A stretch of DNA of 64,000 nt from the sequence record MG592671.1. The stretch is one strand, 5' to 3'. Made by a program: the position numbers and the translations under genes. The notes beneath the pieces were generated by a model. That model made no database searches. It was given only the letters and a program-made list of their open reading frames with translations, and was not told where the DNA came from. Below, piece by piece: positions 9,833 through 62,023 of the stretch (positions are counted from its first letter, which is position 1; the number at the start of each line of letters is the position of its first letter).

Positions 9833-10023
9833 TGCAAGCAACTATGAATATTGATCTAAAAATCCGCAGTAATGCAGGTCGTACATCAATCACTATTCCA
9901 AAAGGTGCAGTGGTTAATGTTGAAACTCGAGGCCCGTATATCCACATTATCTATAACGATAATAACTTTCGCCTAGACGCATCATATCTACAGCAGATGA
10001 CAATTCATAAAGAGTGTAACTAG
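9832..10023 (+). CDS. small hypothetical protein
   Basis: 63 aa, TAATG coupling. Confidence 0.55.
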   Translation: MQATMNIDLKIRSNAGRTSITIPKGAVVNVETRGPYIHIIYNDNNFRLDASYLQQMTIHKECN

Positions 10024-10035
10024 TCATTCATCTAG

Positions 10036-10464
10036 GTGCTTGGTCACCAAGCACCTAGAATATTAACGGAGCATTGTCATATGACGTGTAACGAAGTTAA
10101 GATATGGGATAACAAGTACAAAGACCATGATGGCTTTATTGATCTAGGGTCGTGCTCAGGTCTAGCAAATCGTGTTCTTCATGAACTATATGCTTTTCCT
10201 AGTAGTTTCCCTGGACACTTTGAAGTAGGTGCTCGCTTCGGCATTGATAGTGACTATTCATCAATGTGTACCCTTAGTATGGGTGGTCCAGAAGGGCTAG
10301 CATATACTGTTCGTAGAAATACCAAATGTCATGGAGATAAGTTTGTGTATTTGGAGATTTACGAAGCACATAAACGTTTGTACGAAACAGATGCTTGGAA
10401 ATCTAGAGAGCATCTACGAACAAGAGAAGACGCAAATGGATATTATAATCCTTGGAGCTCCTAG
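10036..10464 (+). CDS. hypothetical protein
   Basis: ORF in track; start uncertain (GTG 10036 or ATG 10081 after GGAG). Confidence 0.55.
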   Translation: MLGHQAPRILTEHCHMTCNEVKIWDNKYKDHDGFIDLGSCSGLANRVLHELYAFPSSFPGHFEVGARFGIDSDYSSMCTLSMGGPEGLAYTVRRNTKCHGDKFVYLEIYEAHKRLYETDAWKSREHLRTREDANGYYNPWSS

Positions 10465-10759
10465 AACTCCACACATTGAGGCTATGATCAAAGCGCTCAA
10501 AGCCTCAAACTTAGAGATTAACATTTCCTTCGCTAGCGAAGGAAATGATGCTAAGGATTCCGAGATACTAAAAGTGGTTGATTATTTTGATATAGATGCT
10601 TCTGTTCTTAATCATGCCTCTGATACTTGGGTACTACAAAAGCATCGCGCCGCAGATGATTGCTTCAGACGCCAAGTTCCAAAGTCCTTAGCTGATCGTA
10701 ACCGCATCGATCCTGGGTGGTGGAACAATATAGGTAAAGGTAAGCGACGCAAGTGGTAA
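10436..10759 (+). CDS. hypothetical protein
   Basis: likely ATG 10436 (MDIIILGAPRT). Confidence 0.55.
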   Translation: MDIIILGAPRTPHIEAMIKALKASNLEINISFASEGNDAKDSEILKVVDYFDIDASVLNHASDTWVLQKHRAADDCFRRQVPKSLADRNRIDPGWWNNIGKGKRRKW

Positions 10760-10777
10760 AGCTTTCGTGTAATAATC

Positions 10778-10800
10778 CACAACTAATGTGTTATATTAGT
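10778..10800 (+). promoter_or_regulatory. phage-specific promoter motif upstream of polX
   Basis: CACAACTAATGTGTTATATTAGT. Confidence 0.6.
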
Positions 10801-10833
10801 GTATAAGATATAACACATTTGGACTCCAATGCC

Positions 10834-11598
10834 ATGACTAAAACAGTACATCCAATAAACATTAAAGTTGCAAACCATCTCCTATATGTATCCCAGTTAA
10901 TGAAACAGGCTGATGAAGTGCACTACAAAATTCAACCATTTATCCGCAATGCAAAGGCCGTAAAAGATTGTGAGTATGAGATGCATAAAGTATCTGATCA
11001 TTACTTACTAAGCTGGAAAGGTTTAGGAAAGGCAGTCTTGAGAGAGATTCGCGAGTTCTTAGATAACGGCTCTCAAACCACTAAAGTCCAAAAGTATTTT
11101 CACTTAAAGGACCCTTCATACAGACCTCACCAAGAAGCACATAATATTGCAACATCGCTCAAGGATATTTTAGTTGAGGATTTTGCAGGTCACTACTTAG
11201 TTGATATTTGTGGATCTATAAGACGCAATGCCCCATTTTGTCGAGATATAGATATTATAACTACTGCTCCGGCTGAGTTAATATACGATATATTCGAAGA
11301 TTGTGAATTTGCAGTTAAGTATGGCGGTGATAAACGAATTCGCTTTGAAGCATATGGATTTGGTGTAGATGTTCGATGTATTTGTCCAGAGAAATACCAG
11401 TTCATGCTTTTACACTATACTGGTTCTGCATCTCATAACATTTTTCTTAGAAAAGAAGCAATAAAAAAGGGATGGACGTTATCTGAAAATGGACTGTATC
11501 GAACAGTTGATAAAGAGGATGTGCTCCCATCACCAAACACAGAGAAGGCAATTTTTAATATGCTAGGCGTGGACTATGTCGCGCCTGAATTTAGATAG
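10834..11598 (+). CDS. polX: DNA polymerase X (beta family), no PHP domain
   Basis: GLGKA HhH, GSIRR...RDIDII (DxD), VDVR, LLHYTGS..HNI.LR..A...GW.LSENGLY, IF..LG.DYV.PE.R. Confidence 0.88.
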   Translation: MTKTVHPINIKVANHLLYVSQLMKQADEVHYKIQPFIRNAKAVKDCEYEMHKVSDHYLLSWKGLGKAVLREIREFLDNGSQTTKVQKYFHLKDPSYRPHQEAHNIATSLKDILVEDFAGHYLVDICGSIRRNAPFCRDIDIITTAPAELIYDIFEDCEFAVKYGGDKRIRFEAYGFGVDVRCICPEKYQFMLLHYTGSASHNIFLRKEAIKKGWTLSENGLYRTVDKEDVLPSPNTEKAIFNMLGVDYVAPEFR

Positions 11599-11609
11599 CT
11601 GTTAAAATC

Positions 11610-11634
11610 CGCAACTAATGTGTTATATGTTATT
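11610..11634 (+). promoter_or_regulatory. phage-specific promoter motif upstream of sigma factor 1
   Basis: CGCAACTAATGTGTTATATGTTATT. Confidence 0.6.
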
Positions 11635-11728
11635 GTAAGTCAAGCGTAACATATAAAATTGACTCACAATTGGATAGTTAATAAAAACACAACCACTGTG
11701 CAAAAACAAACCCCAAAAGGAATAGTCC

Positions 11729-12841
11729 ATGACAGACGTAAAATCTATATTCAAAGCTCTTGCAACAATGACAAACGAGGAACTAGTTAAAGTTGCTCAG
11801 GAGTCTAATATAGAGGCAGTTAAAAAGAAAGCAGTAGAACGCATTGTCATTAAGAACCGTGGTTTAGTCCGTCGTGTAGCACATGCTTATCCCATTTACA
11901 ACACTGAATTTGAGAACCGAGAGCAAGACGGGATGATCGGACTTTTAACAGCTATTAACAAATTTGATGATAATCAAAAAGTTCAGTTTTCAACGTATGC
12001 TTGGACTTGGATCAAGCAAGCAATCATAGAAGAAGGCAATGAGGCAGGAAATGTAATACGTGTTCCTAGACACGTTGCTGAAGCTAGGATGAAAGTGAAT
12101 AAAGTTCGAAATCGTTTCATGAAAGAGGAAGGTCGCTTCCCGTCAATTGAAGAGATGGTAAAACTGTGTAAAACTGTAAAGAAAGACCTAGTAGAATACA
12201 TTATTGCTGGACAAGGCACAGTTTCTGGATCAATTGATGCCCCTGTTAGTGCAGGTGATGAGGCGTTAAGTGCTCATGATATACACGGTGGGCCAGAGTT
12301 GATTGCTGGTATGGTAGGCGAGCATAACATGCAGCTTTTAGTAAAAGCAATTGCCACTATGCACCCTAATGAGCAATTCATGTTAAATGCTGTGTTTGGT
12401 CTAACAGAAGATCATGAAGCATATAATTTTAGTGAATTGGTAGGATGTGTTGAGCGAGCAGACGGAGCTACATTAAACAACGTTACTTCAGTTTCACGTC
12501 AATACCATGCCTTAGTTAAGGTGTTGATTGATCGTATTGATGATGAGCGTATTAAAGCTTATCATGCGCCTAAAAAGGTGGAGTTAACATTTGAGACTCT
12601 TCTAGCTAGAACAACCCCTTCTGTGTTGATGCGCGAGATTAACAAATTACACTACAACGAGCAATTTATCATCCAAGCCCATAATGGATTACTTGAAGAT
12701 GATGACGAGTCGTGGAGTCTTGAAGATATGGTGGGAAATGTTTTTGACTCACAAGAAACTCCTCTTGAAACTGTATCACAAGTTCGCGCTGAATACAAAT
12801 CTTTATTACGTTGGTTAGAACGTCAAATATTAGATCAATAA
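11729..12841 (+). CDS. phage RNA polymerase sigma-70 family factor (RpoD/RpoS-like region 2) with tandem duplicated region-4-like domain
   Basis: KNRGLVRRVAHAY..EQDGMIGLLTAINKFD....FSTYAWTWIKQAI..IRVP; region 3 SIDAPV; two HxNEQF...GL.ED repeats. Confidence 0.85.
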   Translation: MTDVKSIFKALATMTNEELVKVAQESNIEAVKKKAVERIVIKNRGLVRRVAHAYPIYNTEFENREQDGMIGLLTAINKFDDNQKVQFSTYAWTWIKQAIIEEGNEAGNVIRVPRHVAEARMKVNKVRNRFMKEEGRFPSIEEMVKLCKTVKKDLVEYIIAGQGTVSGSIDAPVSAGDEALSAHDIHGGPELIAGMVGEHNMQLLVKAIATMHPNEQFMLNAVFGLTEDHEAYNFSELVGCVERADGATLNNVTSVSRQYHALVKVLIDRIDDERIKAYHAPKKVELTFETLLARTTPSVLMREINKLHYNEQFIIQAHNGLLEDDDESWSLEDMVGNVFDSQETPLETVSQVRAEYKSLLRWLERQILDQ

Positions 12842-12865
12842 CAATATATTGGATATTGTTAAATT

Positions 12866-12908
12866 CGCAACTAATGTTTTATATTATAATGTAAGCGACG
12901 TCGCTTAC
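12866..12908 (+). promoter_or_regulatory. phage-specific promoter + 5' leader hairpin
   Basis: CGCAACTAATGTTTTATATTATAAT then TAAGCGACGTCGCTTA. Confidence 0.7.
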
Positions 12909-12934
12909 ATTATCCTAATTAAAGAGAGCTATAT

Positions 12935-13612
12935 ATGACTACTGTTTTTGATGCAATGATGACTGAATCTGCACTTGATCTTAACTCTGATAACAACGAA
13001 CTGTGCGAGACGTGCATTGATCACGGACATGATGAATGTTTGTGTGGTGCCAAAGAAGAAGAGAACAAAGGCGAAACAAAAATGTTTACTAGTATCTCTG
13101 GTAGCATTGATGAACAAATAGCGAAGCTTGAAGCTCTTAAGGCAGAAAAAGAGGAAGAGGAAGAGCTTGATCGTATCCAAGCAGAAGCTGAAGAAGATAG
13201 CGAAGAGGCAAAAGCTCAAAAACTAGCTGAGAAAAAGAAGAAGCGTTTAGAAGCAGCTCGTGCTCGCTTTATGAAAAAAGTTGAAAGTACATATAACATT
13301 GATATTGCAGAACACACTCGAACATACCGCACTGAATCAAAAAATGCCGTTGGAGGCGAACTTGTGGAAATGATTGTCCATAGTGGAAGTGCTACTGTGT
13401 ATGTAGGTTATCCACAACCAAATGCGCCTCAAGTGCAAGCTAATGCGTCAAACGATCGTGGTGGACGTAAGTTAAGCATTGATGAAGATGATCTGCACGG
13501 AACTGTTGGTTCTAATGGCGTAGACCGTCGTTCTAAAATGACTGCGGCGCAAAAAGAGAAAGTGTGTGCTTCAATTAAGGCTGAAACTGCTGCAATTACT
13601 TTGTGGGATTAA
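12935..13612 (+). CDS. acidic coiled-coil hypothetical protein with N-terminal Cys cluster
   Basis: CETCIDHGHDECLC, Glu/Lys-rich coil. Confidence 0.7.
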   Translation: MTTVFDAMMTESALDLNSDNNELCETCIDHGHDECLCGAKEEENKGETKMFTSISGSIDEQIAKLEALKAEKEEEEELDRIQAEAEEDSEEAKAQKLAEKKKKRLEAARARFMKKVESTYNIDIAEHTRTYRTESKNAVGGELVEMIVHSGSATVYVGYPQPNAPQVQANASNDRGGRKLSIDEDDLHGTVGSNGVDRRSKMTAAQKEKVCASIKAETAAITLWD

Positions 13613-13623
13613 CACCCTATACA

Positions 13624-13649
13624 AAAAGGCTGCCCTAGGGCAGCCTTTT
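13624..13649 (+). terminator. perfect palindromic terminator
   Basis: AAAAGGCTGCCCTAGGGCAGCCTTTT. Confidence 0.7.
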
Positions 13650-13685
13650 CTGCGTACTAACAACTCATTAACTAAGAGAAACATC

Positions 13686-14381
13686 ATGACTATTAACGTT
13701 TTAGATTACCGTCCTTTATGTGTTAAGATTGCAAGCACGTACCACACTAAGTCCAACGCTATTGATAAGGATGACCTTATCCAAGAAGGCATGGTTGGTT
13801 TGTGTAATGCGCTAAAGAACTTTGATGAAACTCGTGGAGTGCCATTTGCTGCATTCGCTCGCTGGTACATTAAAGATGCTATGAGCAAATGTGCGTTCAA
13901 GAACTTCACACACGTTAAGGTAGCAGGAGAAGGCGGTCGACACCACGCTAAACTGTTCGCTAACTTGCACAAGTACCGTAAATCAGGACAGTTCTTGACA
14001 TTACAAGAAGCGGAACTTGCTTCTAAAGAACTAGCAGTTCCAATCGAATACATTTGGGATATGGAAAATATATTAGTTGATCGTACGTTTCATATTGATC
14101 AACAAGTACAGGACATGGAAGGTACTACAGGTCATGAGCTTCTTTCAGATTGTTTAGATGAGAGTTTGTCAATTGCCATCTCTGATATTAAACAAGAAAG
14201 TCAGCTTAAATGTATGATTGAGGCATTAGAGCCTCGCTACCAAGCGATCATTAATGGTCGCTTCCTAAAAGAAAAACCTTTACCACGTAAAACGATTGCT
14301 GAGGATCTAGGTATTAGTCAGCAACGTGTTGCTCAACTAGAAAAGAATGCTATCTCTTTATTACAAGAAATGACTGCTTAA
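13686..14381 (+). CDS. phage sigma-70 family factor, RpoH (sigma32)-like
   Basis: DDLIQEGMVGL..ALKNFD..RGVPFAAFARWYIK; KLFANLHK resembles RpoH box KLFFNLRK; C-terminal GISQQRVAQLEKNA; likely ATG 13686. Confidence 0.85.
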   Translation: MTINVLDYRPLCVKIASTYHTKSNAIDKDDLIQEGMVGLCNALKNFDETRGVPFAAFARWYIKDAMSKCAFKNFTHVKVAGEGGRHHAKLFANLHKYRKSGQFLTLQEAELASKELAVPIEYIWDMENILVDRTFHIDQQVQDMEGTTGHELLSDCLDESLSIAISDIKQESQLKCMIEALEPRYQAIINGRFLKEKPLPRKTIAEDLGISQQRVAQLEKNAISLLQEMTA

Positions 14382-14397
14382 ATTAGAGGAACTAATT

Positions 14398-14550
14398 ATG
14401 TCTAAAGCACTACGTGATGCCTTGAAAGAAGCCGGTTTCAATGAAATGTCTCGTCGTGGGCTTCCTAAGCCACCTCGCGCTAAGAAGTCACAACCAGCTA
14501 AGGCAACTATTGTTATTAAGCGTTCTATTAAGAAACTAGTCCAGGAGTAG
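14398..14550 (+). CDS. small basic protein (50 aa, not in ORF track)
   Basis: MSKALRDALKEAGFNEMSRRGLPKPPRAKK...; AGAGGA RBS. Confidence 0.55.
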   Translation: MSKALRDALKEAGFNEMSRRGLPKPPRAKKSQPAKATIVIKRSIKKLVQE

Positions 14551-14552
14551 AC

Positions 14553-14885
14553 ATGATCTTACCAATGTGCAATGTGTCCCCTGTTACACCAAGCTTTATT
14601 AAATCCGTAACAGATCCAGAGACAAACGTAACTATTGCCATTTACTCTCCAGCTCAAGGTCTTTGGAAGCCGCGTGATACTGGCGGTGAAGTCATTCAAC
14701 ATAAACCAAGCTTCATTTACTCAGTATTAGTACATCATGCTGAGTACTGGGAAAAGAAACTCCAGACAAATCTCACCCCATTTATGCAAGAAGTTGCAGA
14801 ATCACAACTCGCTCTTCATAAACAAGAGCTCGAGCACGAACAATGGGATCTGCTTCACAAATATGACTTAAGACATATGCACTAA
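14553..14885 (+). CDS. hypothetical protein
   Basis: 110 aa ORF, AGGAG RBS. Confidence 0.6.
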   Translation: MILPMCNVSPVTPSFIKSVTDPETNVTIAIYSPAQGLWKPRDTGGEVIQHKPSFIYSVLVHHAEYWEKKLQTNLTPFMQEVAESQLALHKQELEHEQWDLLHKYDLRHMH

Positions 14886-14896
14886 AAGGAGTTTAT

Positions 14897-15649
14897 ATGA
14901 GTCATGAACCTCGGCTAATCATCTTCTCAGGGGCTGGGCTAGACGCTGCCTCTGGTATCCCAACGTTCCGCGATTCAAACGGCCTATGGGAAGGCAACGA
15001 TGTCATGGAAGTATGTACTATGAGCACGTTCGAACAGAACTACGAGAAAGTGCATCGCTTCTATAACCAAATGCGTACTGCTCTTGCTAACGTTGAGCCA
15101 AATTCTGCCCACAAGTTCATTGCGGAGATGCAGGATGAGTATGGCGCCGCTCGTGTTGTAAACTTCACAGCTAACGTATCTGATCTATTAGAGCGAGCTA
15201 ACGTACAGAACGTTCGCCACGTACATGGTATCCTAACTGAGATCATTACAGACTACAAAGGTCCTGATCATGAAACTAAGACAGTTGGATACACTGAGTA
15301 CGATTTTGAACAAGATCGTATTGATGCTCGTACGTTCCAGCCTAACTGTAAACCTAACGTTGTATTCTTTGGTGAAATGGCACCGATGTATGCAGAGATG
15401 GACTATATTTTGCAAGGACTTCGTCCACAAGATACATTTGTGATTGTAGGTAGTACACTTGAGGTAAATCCTGTTCATCATTATGCGTGGGGTAAAGACT
15501 GCTATAGTGTGATCATTAATCCAAGCTATAAAGAGGGCAGTGAAAGTCCTTTAGACATTGCTGGGATGACGGTAACATCAGCGTTGTCACTAACTGCTGA
15601 GGATGGGTTTGAATGCATTCGAGACTTAATCAAAAAACGAATGGGTTAA
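14897..15649 (+). CDS. Sir2/sirtuin-family NAD-dependent deacylase
   Basis: FSGAGL.A.SGIPTFR...GLW, HVHG, KPNVVFFGE, VGSTLEV; lacks CxxC zinc ribbon. Confidence 0.88.
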   Translation: MSHEPRLIIFSGAGLDAASGIPTFRDSNGLWEGNDVMEVCTMSTFEQNYEKVHRFYNQMRTALANVEPNSAHKFIAEMQDEYGAARVVNFTANVSDLLERANVQNVRHVHGILTEIITDYKGPDHETKTVGYTEYDFEQDRIDARTFQPNCKPNVVFFGEMAPMYAEMDYILQGLRPQDTFVIVGSTLEVNPVHHYAWGKDCYSVIINPSYKEGSESPLDIAGMTVTSALSLTAEDGFECIRDLIKKRMG

Positions 15650-15651
15650 CT

Positions 15652-16071
15652 ATGTCATTAATCAAATTATTTTGTGATGTCCAGCGTACTCGATCAAATG
15701 CTGCTAAGGACGCCTTGTGCGAAGGCTTAATGGAGCGCAGAGCTCCTAGTGATCTGGCTATTGGTATGTTGCGCATATTAATGAAAGAAGGGCATAGCTT
15801 TCGCCCAAAAGACGCGCCTTTGTTTGATAAGTTATCAAAGCACTACCACAGAGATATTGTTAAATTGAATACTAGCTCTGATCCTGAAGCGTGGGACAAA
15901 GTCCATTTTCCAACAGAGAAGTATCTCGCTGCCGGAAAAATAATCAGTGATCTTGAGATAGCAGATCTATCTAATCCTACCGAAGAAGATCTAATCACAA
16001 TTGCATTAGCTGGCATAACTGATGAAGAGTTTGAAACGTTTAAGAGCTACGAGCTTACAATGCAACCATAA
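15652..16071 (+). CDS. hypothetical protein
   Basis: likely ATG 15652. Confidence 0.6.
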   Translation: MSLIKLFCDVQRTRSNAAKDALCEGLMERRAPSDLAIGMLRILMKEGHSFRPKDAPLFDKLSKHYHRDIVKLNTSSDPEAWDKVHFPTEKYLAAGKIISDLEIADLSNPTEEDLITIALAGITDEEFETFKSYELTMQP

Positions 16072-16135
16072 CAATATGTTATAATATAATGTAGGGGTCG
16101 TGTGCCCCTTGTATTAACTAAACTTGGAGACTTTC

Positions 16136-60187: not shown

Positions 60188-62023
60188 TTAAAATTCTATG
60201 TTGTTTTCTTTTATATCAGTTGTTCCAACACTAAAGTTATCTCCGATATTGTTTGTAACTATATTGTATCCAGTATCAGTTCCATTTCTAAGATTTGTAA
60301 CCGTTCCAGGTATCGGGGATCGATTACCAGTAATTAAGCAATACTTGCACCATCCTGCAATTAGTAGTGAATTTGTTGAATTTACAGAAAACTCATTATT
60401 TTGTAACGTTATATGGTCCCCAGAGACTCCCTCAGAAGTAAAATCAATTATAGGTTGATTAGTATCAAATACGTTGTTAATAACCCTCTTATAACTACAT
60501 GATGCAGCATTACTTCCTTGAAGTAATAGCGAATCAGACCCTGTAAATGTTATCCTATTACCAGATATTTCATCCCAGTCATTCATGTTTAGTCTTGAGG
60601 TTTGGCCGCGCATTATGTTGTCTTTGATGATAGTTTTCTGACCAGATGACGATAGTTCTAAATCATTCATGTAATTGCTTGTTACTAGGCAGTTGGAAAT
60701 CTTATCAATGTACAAAACATCAACATTGTTATTTGAAACATTTACATAGTCCATAGTAGGTTGTGATGTAGTAGATTGTGATATCGATAATTGACCAACA
60801 CATTTGTTCCCAGTAACAGTAAAATTGCCATTTCCTGATAAACGCATATCGCCGTTAACAAAAGTGCCGCTAACCACATTATTCGATACTACAACATTAT
60901 CTTCGCTAGATGGGTCAGCTTTATCTTCCAACCAGACAACTCGTATACCAAAAGAACCAGTACCAGTAACATTGTTAGAGCATGAATTTCCATTAATAGT
61001 CATATTTCCAAATGGAGATTGCACATATAGTTCACTGCCATCACCGTTATCAGCACCAACTCCATTATCATAGCAGACATTACTAGATATTACTGATCCT
61101 TTACCTCCCCCACATTTTATACCTGAATCTCTATTGCCAAAGACAGTATTACCAACAACAGAATTGTCCCTTGATTGTATGTATGTTCCGTGCTCACCAC
61201 TACCTGATATTATATTATTAACTATCGAGTGCCCTCTAGTATCTCTCCATGATAATATGCCATCCGCACCCGAGTAATCCAAACACGCATTGTTATCGTA
61301 TATGTGGTTTGCATCCACAATCACATTATCACCAAAACCTACACTATTACCATAAGCTAACGCAATTCCTAAAATATTATTAAAAACTCGATTTCCTTGT
61401 ATTGTATTATTTTCTCTATAATTATAAATGCCAGCACCTTCCCCGTTATATATAACGCAATTCTCAATAATCGAGTTAGGCGCACGCAGTCCAAGAACTC
61501 CTTTGTTGTATGGTATATTAAATCCATCACCAACATATGATGATTTCTGTGGATAATATATCCTAACTCCTGATATAGTAACTGCAAATGCGTCATTAGC
61601 ATATACGAGATAGTTAGTAAAATACACATTTTCAGTTGAGGCTTTAATAGTTCCTCCTGTTATTGACACATATGACCCTGTGATTGTAATTCCTGAGTTC
61701 TCACTCACAACGTTTATGCTTATTGATGCTGATCTTGATATGCGTATGTCAGTGTTATCAATATCAATAGTAATAGGGTTAATTAGACAATCATAACCAT
61801 CAGGAATTAAAACTGTTCTCCCGCTTGATATAGCTAACTCAATAGCAACAGTATCATCAGTAACGCCATCACCAACAGCTCCAAAATCCTTTACGTTTAC
61901 AGCATCAGCAAAGTGATCACCTAAAGTTCTAGCAGTTGTTGAGTCAGTAGCAGTAACTAGTAAACTAGATCCATCTGGGCCGGCTGGACCACCAATTAAA
62001 TCATTCGATACGCGAGTTGTCAT
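60188..62023 (-). CDS. tailspike/depolymerase, parallel beta-helix (PbH1 repeats)
   Basis: RTLGDHFADAVNVKDFGAVGDGVTDDT; repeated I.GN...N repeats. Confidence 0.8.
   Translation of the reverse strand: MTTRVSNDLIGGPAGPDGSSLLVTATDSTTARTLGDHFADAVNVKDFGAVGDGVTDDTVAIELAISSGRTVLIPDGYDCLINPITIDIDNTDIRISRSASISINVVSENSGITITGSYVSITGGTIKASTENVYFTNYLVYANDAFAVTISGVRIYYPQKSSYVGDGFNIPYNKGVLGLRAPNSIIENCVIYNGEGAGIYNYRENNTIQGNRVFNNILGIALAYGNSVGFGDNVIVDANHIYDNNACLDYSGADGILSWRDTRGHSIVNNIISGSGEHGTYIQSRDNSVVGNTVFGNRDSGIKCGGGKGSVISSNVCYDNGVGADNGDGSELYVQSPFGNMTINGNSCSNNVTGTGSFGIRVVWLEDKADPSSEDNVVVSNNVVSGTFVNGDMRLSGNGNFTVTGNKCVGQLSISQSTTSQPTMDYVNVSNNNVDVLYIDKISNCLVTSNYMNDLELSSSGQKTIIKDNIMRGQTSRLNMNDWDEISGNRITFTGSDSLLLQGSNAASCSYKRVINNVFDTNQPIIDFTSEGVSGDHITLQNNEFSVNSTNSLLIAGWCKYCLITGNRSPIPGTVTNLRNGTDTGYNIVTNNIGDNFSVGTTDIKENNIEF

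Follow-up and report, generated by a model that had tools for sequence, protein, structure and literature searches.

A sigma factor of a marine Vibrio jumbo phage with a predicted tandem duplication of a non-canonical region 4

Region 4 of σ70-family proteins is the anchor on the β flap of RNA polymerase and the reader of the −35 box, and it is the usual target of activators, anti-sigma factors and phage takeover proteins. Jumbo phages of 'group 2' have no RNA polymerase of their own and carry sigma factors with which to exploit that of the host (PMC7824862). In the giant myovirus CBB, one of the Rak2/GAP32/CBB-like phages (Rak2-like below), the sigma gene CBB_513 was placed in the predicted early region by the authors of the CBB study, who regarded the TGAAACG class, located ahead of DNA-synthesis genes, as a divergent type of RpoD-like promoter (PMC5259590). 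Here we describe a related gene, NVP2275O_118, and its product gp118 (also P0001), from the 349-kb marine jumbo phage Vibrio phage 2.275.O._10N.286.54.E11 of the Nahant collection, which infects Vibrio cyclitrophicus. The stretch analysed, hereafter the window, comprises 64,000 nucleotides, positions 62001 to 126000 of record MG592671.1. Positions are those of the window unless the record is named, and the sigma gene and all features within it lie on the plus strand. The feature that sets gp118 apart is its C-terminus, which carries two modules resembling region 4 where its relatives have one.

The sequence-only reading of this DNA had proposed a sigma factor gene with RpoD/RpoS-type regions 2 and 3 at 11729 to 12841. 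The open reading frame (ORF) at this position is indeed open, encodes 370 amino acids, and matches MG592671.1 73729-74841 at 100%; GenBank labels it merely 'RNA polymerase sigma-70 region 2'. Regions 2 and 3 were supported by the sole Pfam match, Sigma70_r2 (PF04542; E 2.6e-12, 46.8 bits against a cut-off of 24), and by the NCBIfam RpoD, RpoS and SigB/F/G models, which cover residues ~10-230 and end in helix 4.1 of the first C-terminal module. The protein also matched phrog_351, 'RNA polymerase sigma factor', in PHROG (E 1e-31). It fell far below every curated subfamily cut-off of NCBIfam, the best being TIGR02997 with 94.7 versus 384.5 bits, and rpoS_proteo reaching 68.3 bits versus 378.7. 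Neither Sigma70_r4 (PF04545) nor Sigma70_r4_2 (PF08281) matched the whole protein or either module alone, even at E 1. In structural comparison by Foldseek, the full-length model matched sigma-S and sigma-A chains in holoenzyme structures (E ~4e-8) over ~280-320 alignment columns. Alignment to a PDB sigma-A profile showed the family profile to be colinear with primary sigmas from region 1.2/2 through into region 4, and its match to T. thermophilus SigA extended as far as residue 412 of 423. gp118 is a σ70-family member at the level of fold, and its region 4 goes unrecognised by the sequence models.

The domain order of gp118 is normal, with regions 1.2, 2 and 3, the 3.2 linker, and region 4. 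Region 2 (residues 42-101; 11852 to 12031), the PF04542 match, is the part for core binding and −10 recognition and was modelled with a predicted local distance difference test score (pLDDT) of ~90 or higher over most of its length. Region 3 (residues ~111-162; 12059 to 12214) was located by the NCBIfam sigma models and by the family-profile alignment to PDB sigma-A; PF04539, the region 3 family, matched the orthologs P0003 and P0112 and not P0001. The 3.2 linker (residues ~163-197; 12215 to 12319) has normal length, a pLDDT below 50, and no large insertion or deletion relative to that of primary sigmas, with which it is colinear. A separate observation concerns residues 87-97 (11987 to 12019), which contain AWTWIKQ as against ATTAIRQ in the Rak2-like family. 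Primary sigmas have ATWWIRQ at this position, with the conserved Trp-Trp pair of region 2.3. The −10 melting apparatus of gp118 may also be atypical.

Following the 3.2 linker are two modules of about 75 amino acids each. Module 1 (residues 198-279; 12320 to 12565) is the proximal non-canonical region 4, orthologous to the sole region 4 of the Rak2-like sigmas. Module 2 (residues 297-370; 12617 to 12838) is the distal copy, acidic and with a conserved signature of its own. They are joined by a linker of ~17 residues (280-296; 12566 to 12616) with a basic patch, PKK, which is the least conserved part and where pLDDT dips to 53. The two peptides quoted for the modules in the sequence-only reading do start exactly at 12359 and 12647, corresponding to residues 211 and 307. 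Residues 203-273 aligned to residues 299-370 with 33% identity (24/72), 60% positives and one gap (BLASTP E 7e-12). The Smith-Waterman score between the modules was 95, compared with a mean of 23.7 (standard deviation 4.2, maximum 50) for shuffled sequences, none of which reached 95 in 5000 trials. From the alignment, the shuffles, the missing Pfam matches and the sub-cut-off NCBIfam scores, we conclude that the repeat is real and far beyond chance, and that region 4 departs from the canonical form in sequence.

The relationship of the modules to region 4 was evident from profiles and from predicted structures. A profile of 44 modules aligned by hhalign to a profile of 31 canonical region 4 sequences with 91% probability (E 1e-6) and in the expected register, that is, helix 4.1, the first helix of the helix-turn-helix (HTH), a 7-residue template gap, and the recognition helix. 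Module 2 alone gave a weak match to canonical region 4 (6.6% probability), though in the correct register; what ties it to region 4 is the pooled profile together with the fold. A 42-sequence family alignment was used to build the AlphaFold2 model of residues 196-370, which had a mean pLDDT of 87.4, with both modules confident. Each module consists of two helices, a 4-residue helix, a β-bridged hairpin and a long helix, so that the first HTH helix is short and the turn gives way to a hairpin of ~7 residues. The sequence-only reading had noticed an insertion in the HTH turn, which is thus borne out in both modules, by the 7-residue gap between profiles as well as by the modelled hairpin. The absence of the RERxRQ helix was likewise correctly noticed, with SRQY in module 1 and RAEY in module 2 instead; the recognition-helix sequences read S-R-Q-Y-H and V-R-A-E-Y-K, respectively.

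Comparison of the modelled modules with 48,161 PDB representatives by VIA-align gave lists in which nearly all of the top 25 rows were sigma-4 domains. Module 1 was matched to region 4 of M. tuberculosis SigL (Z 8.2, 70 aligned residues, root-mean-square deviation (rmsd) 3.0) and to T. aquaticus SigA 361-435 (Z 8.1). Module 2 was matched to E. coli sigma-32 residues 218-284 (Z 8.4, 67 aligned, rmsd 2.8, 22% identity), to BldN region 4 (Z 7.9, rmsd 1.6), and to S. aureus sigma-A domain 4 (Z 7.3). Since a Z near 8 is by itself middling, the assignment of the sigma-4 fold draws on the uniformity of the lists and on the profile match, rather than on Z alone. Against PDB, the C-terminal model had no Foldseek match with E <0.001, only local region 4 matches such as 1ku3 with a template modelling (TM) score of 0.73. 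In ESM Atlas the C-terminal half was nearest to phage 'Sigma-70 region 4' feature clusters (score 0.92). The resemblance to sigma region 4, earlier noticed from the letters, was not refuted by this check, as both copies model as sigma-4 folds. On these models, gp118 ends in two tandem copies of a non-canonical region 4, each with the sigma-4 fold.

We then consider how widespread this arrangement is. A family profile search of a 5.8-billion-cluster collection separated the family (243-511 bits) from generic sigmas (at most 137 bits). Most of its members are sigmas of 321-347 amino acids from Rak2/GAP32/CBB/Asteriusvirus-type jumbo phages; about 60 such clusters have one variant region 4 each at the C-terminus. 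The region 4 motif G-L ... G ... R-x-Y is common to gp118 and the Rak2-like sigmas, and PF04545 matched none of the Rak2-like single-module sigmas of the family. Because these sigmas share the variant region 4 singly, the variant is a family trait, and the tandem arrangement is the novelty. By its region 4, gp118 belongs to this wider jumbo-phage sigma family, outside its Rak2-like core.

An exhaustive HMMER search with the tandem C-terminus against 1.84 billion representative proteins retrieved P0001, P0112 and P0113. The tandem form was confined in that search to two clusters with three proteins (P0001, P0002 and P0112), all from marine phages. P0002 is 52% identical to P0001 and probably lies in the same 50% cluster. 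P0112, of 370 amino acids and from Tara Oceans, is 41% identical and has both modules. The positional ortholog P0113 (locus L058; 264 amino acids, 38% identical) has one module. In the viral structure library BFVD gp118 matched itself only, and a related-locus search of viral contigs returned only generic sigmas that matched in regions 2-3 and lacked the C-terminal modules. A limited full-text literature search turned up no paper on a tandem region 4, and a precedent may exist. A more distant sigma, P0003 (366 amino acids; Logan contig L054), has one module followed, after a basic linker, by an unrelated C-terminal tail of ~100 amino acids. The tail was considered as a region 4 copy and rejected, being not detectably region 4. 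The same contig carries AAAAAGCTTG seven times and AAAGGCGTATAAT three times, which are possibly that phage's own promoter motifs.

The three module 2 sequences formed one clade with 99/98 support that branches like the whole proteins, which argues for a single duplication after the split from the Rak2-like group. Module 2 aligned to the Rak2-like modules by hhalign with 85% probability (E 6e-6). Region 4 was duplicated once, in the ancestor of the three marine phage proteins, and both copies are under purifying selection. Between P0001 and its closest relative, synonymous sites are saturated (proportion of synonymous differences ~0.75), and the proportion of nonsynonymous differences (pN) was 0.26 in module 2, 0.30 in region 2, 0.39 in module 1 and 0.57 in the inter-module linker, which is 36% identical to that of P0002. 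Pairwise identity among the three proteins was 39-53% in module 2 and 29-35% in module 1. These values bear on the simplest explanation of the second copy, that it is a functionless leftover of the duplication. The fact of duplication by itself would allow for this. However, module 2 has been kept in three lineages just 41-52% identical overall, and it has changed less than module 1, with a pN as low as 0.26 while synonymous sites are saturated. We regard a leftover as hardly tenable, and among the alternatives considered in this work it is the one that the data contradict.

Module 2 also has features of its own. Its invariant signature comprises LH-x-NE-x-FI, NG, DSQ-x-T in the hairpin and V-[RK]-AEY-[KR], and the near-invariant recognition-helix Arg of the family (the R257 position) is replaced by Ala. 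The net charges of module 2 versus module 1 in the three proteins are −9 versus −4, −12 versus +1, and −1 versus +2; module 2 of P0001, with its net charge of −9, has an isoelectric point of 4.4. Canonical region 4 averages +3.3 and the Rak2-like modules −2.3. By these measures, module 2 is both the more conserved and the more acidic copy.

Promoter-like sequences in the phage were examined next to these features. CGCAACT occurs 30 times in the window as against 6.6 expected, 24 of them on the plus strand. About 25 of the 30 are copies of an element of ~35 bp, hereafter class I, located between 2954 and 35544 and consisting of an A/T-rich, GTTAAA-like stretch, CGCAACT, N12, TATAAT and GTAAGC. 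Many copies are followed immediately by a short inverted repeat that starts in GTAAGC, by which the transcript would begin with a 5′ hairpin. Genome-wide, near-consensus elements (CGCAACT with a TATAAT-like hexamer at N12) were present only at ~65-98 kb of the record, a 33-kb stretch dense in short ORFs and early-looking. A class I promoter-like element with a degenerate −10 lies upstream of the sigma gene itself (11610 to 11650, plus strand), 119 nt from the start codon. Another, CGCAACT-N12-TATAAT-GTAAGC (12866 to 12896, plus strand), is located just after the sigma stop codon and ahead of the next two genes, gp119 and gp120. Because they drive the sigma gene itself and are confined to the 33-kb region, class I promoters may not be targets of gp118.

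The promoter architecture is kept in the relatives, with CCGCAAT/CCACAAT in the Tara phage and CTGTACT in the closest relative (contig L053). In the phage of the single-module ortholog (locus L058) the box is CGCATAC, placed as far from TATAAT as in class I, with the same A/T-rich element upstream of the CGCA box. These promoters bear on the possibility that both modules read DNA, so that module 1 would contact a −35-like box and module 2 the A/T-rich, GTTAAA-like stretch upstream of it, giving a longer, tripartite promoter. A conserved A/T-rich element does lie directly upstream of CGCAACT in class I promoters, the sigma-4 fold is kept in both modules, conserved Arg/Lys residues remain on the module 2 helix equivalent to the recognition helix, and the strong conservation of module 2 is in keeping with a surface for specific binding. 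We nevertheless find two readers rather doubtful, since the A/T-rich element and the CGCA box are found together in a phage whose sigma has a single module, module 2 carries net charges of −9 and −12 in two of the three proteins, and it lacks the near-invariant Arg of the family. The L058 promoters on the one hand, and the charge and missing Arg of module 2 on the other, weigh against the second copy being needed for the CGCAACT box, and module 2 is probably not a DNA reader. Of the two roles imagined in the sequence-only reading, that of a flap- or partner-binding decoy domain fits the charge data better than that of reading the unusual box.

The spacing within class I suggests another arrangement. 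Canonical σ70 promoters have a spacing of N17-18. The class I box lies just 12-13 bp from TATAAT, and the two modules might have exchanged roles, with module 2 on the β-flap tip and module 1 freed for a box close to the −10 (CGCAAC-N13-TATAAT). The greater conservation of module 2 would be expected of a surface fitting the invariant host flap. On the other hand, the 3.2 linker before module 1 is of normal length and colinear with that of canonical sigmas, and the short spacing is shared by the phage of the single-module ortholog. The class I register may also differ, as two overlapping −10-like hexamers make the spacing ambiguous. Taken together, these points make an exchange of roles unlikely.

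A second promoter class, TGTTATAAT, of the extended −10 type, was found 71 times genome-wide, in the window for example at 16077, 24881, 42421 and 51281, and is usually followed 4-5 nt on by a second −10-like sequence, TATAAG(C). Ten of these copies have a TG[CT][AT]AC box exactly N18 from TATAAT, compared with 0-2 at other spacings. Eight of the ten lie outside the window, six of those at 134-194 kb of the record. An assignment of a promoter class to gp118 from sequence was attempted and failed; the overlapping −10-like hexamers leave the class I register ambiguous. The interval 10000 to 15900 was present in five small RNA-seq libraries from 2019 (two studies), with 78-100% of sampled words. 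These libraries, available as assembled contigs that break at the 12866 to 12896 element because it is repeated, show neither transcription starts nor strand. In phage CBB (KU574722.1), TGAAACG-N16-TATAAT occurs 21 times on one strand and at one fixed spacing, mostly as TGnTATAAT, and this set is a candidate regulon of the single-module sigma CBB_513.

The gene neighbourhood of the sigma is conserved. All four genes (P0001, P0002, P0112 and P0113) lie in one type of neighbourhood, in which the sigma gene is followed directly by that of a gp119-like charged protein, the single-module ortholog included. gp119 itself (12935 to 13612, plus strand) is a conserved charged or coiled-coil protein. Its homologs in contigs L053 (2754-3278) and L055 (2065-2673) are 42-43% identical and at the same position, and one is also present in L058 (1071-1424). 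They share a C-terminal block, HTR-x-Y ... PQPNAPQ ... SNDRGG, and gp119 matched no Pfam family. An N-terminal Cys/His cluster of gp119 was considered as a zinc anti-sigma motif and rejected, as it is not conserved in the homologs. It is possible that gp119 is a partner of gp118. In all three contigs long enough, the gp119 gene is followed by that of a sigma-32-like sigma with a canonical region 4 and then by DNA ligase. In the window this second sigma is gp120 (NVP2275O_120; 13686 to 14381, plus strand), a 'hypothetical protein' in GenBank, which matched PF04542 (E 4e-12) and PF04545 (E 1.7e-8) and was nearest to the NCBIfam RpoH models (E ~1e-33, below cut-off). In L053 and L055, the two related contigs that extend far enough, its counterpart likewise lies two genes after the tandem sigma. 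A third σ70-family gene lies outside the window at MG592671.1 214316-215515 (L048 979-2178) and encodes an RpoD-like protein of 399 amino acids, in which Pfam recognised regions 1.2, 2 and 3 and a canonical region 4. Vibrio phage 2.275.O therefore has at least three sigma factors, two of them (gp120 and the 399-residue protein) with a canonical region 4. It is conceivable that module 2 has a role in ordering the three.

With two other sigmas that could serve transcription, gp118 might act mainly as an inhibitor or decoy, which occupies the host core polymerase or sequesters a factor through its extra copy and directs little transcription of its own. A second sigma-4-like surface could mimic the host region 4 for anti-sigma or activator proteins, and one of the solved structures matched is the complex of phage G1 ORF67 with S. 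aureus sigma-A domain 4. In contrast, regions 2 and 3 and the motif of the 3.2 linker are under purifying selection, as expected of a working initiation factor. The single-module homologs are conserved in ~60 jumbo-phage clusters, and CBB has a strictly spaced class of private promoters with no other obvious reader. We judge a mere decoy to be quite improbable.

The reading that we favour, with about even confidence that it is correct, is that gp118 is a working sigma in which module 1 does the usual job of region 4 and module 2 has been added for regulation or for binding a partner. gp118 would redirect the host core RNA polymerase, with module 1 in the usual place on the β-flap tip, facing the upstream promoter box. 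This placement of module 1 is suggested by the normal-length, colinear 3.2 linker and by its orthology to the only region 4 of the relatives. Module 2, held on the linker of ~17 residues with its basic patch, would have taken a new, protein-binding or regulatory role rather than that of a second sequence-specific DNA reader. It could contact gp119 or another surface of the polymerase, or mask module 1 in the free sigma. Such a role is more likely than DNA reading because module 2 is acidic and without the family Arg, and because the geometry of the box is kept in the phage with a single module.

Several points weigh against this reading. Binding of gp118 to core, flap and DNA is presumed, the mutual placement of the two modules in the model is unreliable (predicted TM score 0.50), and the promoter class of gp118 was not assignable from sequence. 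Charge is a weak guide, as the single modules of the Rak2-like sigmas are also slightly acidic (mean −2.3). Module 2 of P0112 is nearly neutral, and the long helix of module 2 retains conserved basic residues (V-[RK]-A-E-Y-[KR]), so that it may bind DNA.

As a more speculative idea, and one that we consider unlikely, the second copy may be a built-in regulatory device of a kind without known precedent. A second sigma-4 head on a flexible tether might allow a single sigma to work with related boxes at either of two spacings; boxes of the GCAAC/GTTAC type are found in the phage at N13 in the early-looking 33-kb stretch and at N18 in other parts of the genome. Alternatively, mimicry of region 4 might capture gp119, the β flap, or an anti-sigma of host or phage, and serve as a timing switch among the three sigmas.

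Compared with the bacterial σ70 factors of groups 1-3 (RpoD, RpoS, SigB/F/G), gp118 has the same order of regions 1.2-2-3-3.2-4 and the same fold in each domain. It differs from them in having no region 1.1, an insertion in the HTH turn, no RERxRQ, and region 4 twice. Sigmas of the ECF41/42 and similar types of the extracytoplasmic function (ECF) group carry, after region 4, an additional C-terminal domain by which activity is modulated; this domain has an unrelated fold, and these sigmas lack region 3. gp118 is like them in its extra C-terminal domain and unlike them in that the extension is a copy of region 4. The nearest neighbours of the C-terminal half of gp118 in ESM Atlas (0.91-0.92) were stand-alone phage 'sigma-70 region 4' HTH proteins of ~80-85 amino acids. 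These are separate proteins, whereas module 2 is part of the sigma and, as profile and tree indicate, derived from module 1 of the same gene. A natural sigma with two selected copies of region 4 would offer a ready-made test of how much freedom exists at that position.

The closest comparison is with the Rak2-like sigmas (CBB_513, the GAP32 sigma, EJP02_431 of EJP2, and Munch gp487), which are 24-27% identical to P0001. In this large group of giant enterobacterial phages the variant region 4 is standard in single copy, and their private promoters, such as TGAAACG-N16-TATAAT of CBB, have no assigned reader. Because the single-copy form is so widespread, the structure and specificity of the variant region 4 would explain the control of transcription in many jumbo phages. 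The Rak2-like sigmas share with gp118 the organization of regions 2-3, the region 4 with a hairpin insertion, the R-x-Y helix, and the lack of a PF04545 match. Unlike gp118, they have one region 4, after which the protein ends, and an N-terminal extension of ~50-60 amino acids (KLNL...DECF), which gp118 lacks; gp118 has ~90 extra residues at the C-terminus, which form its second module.

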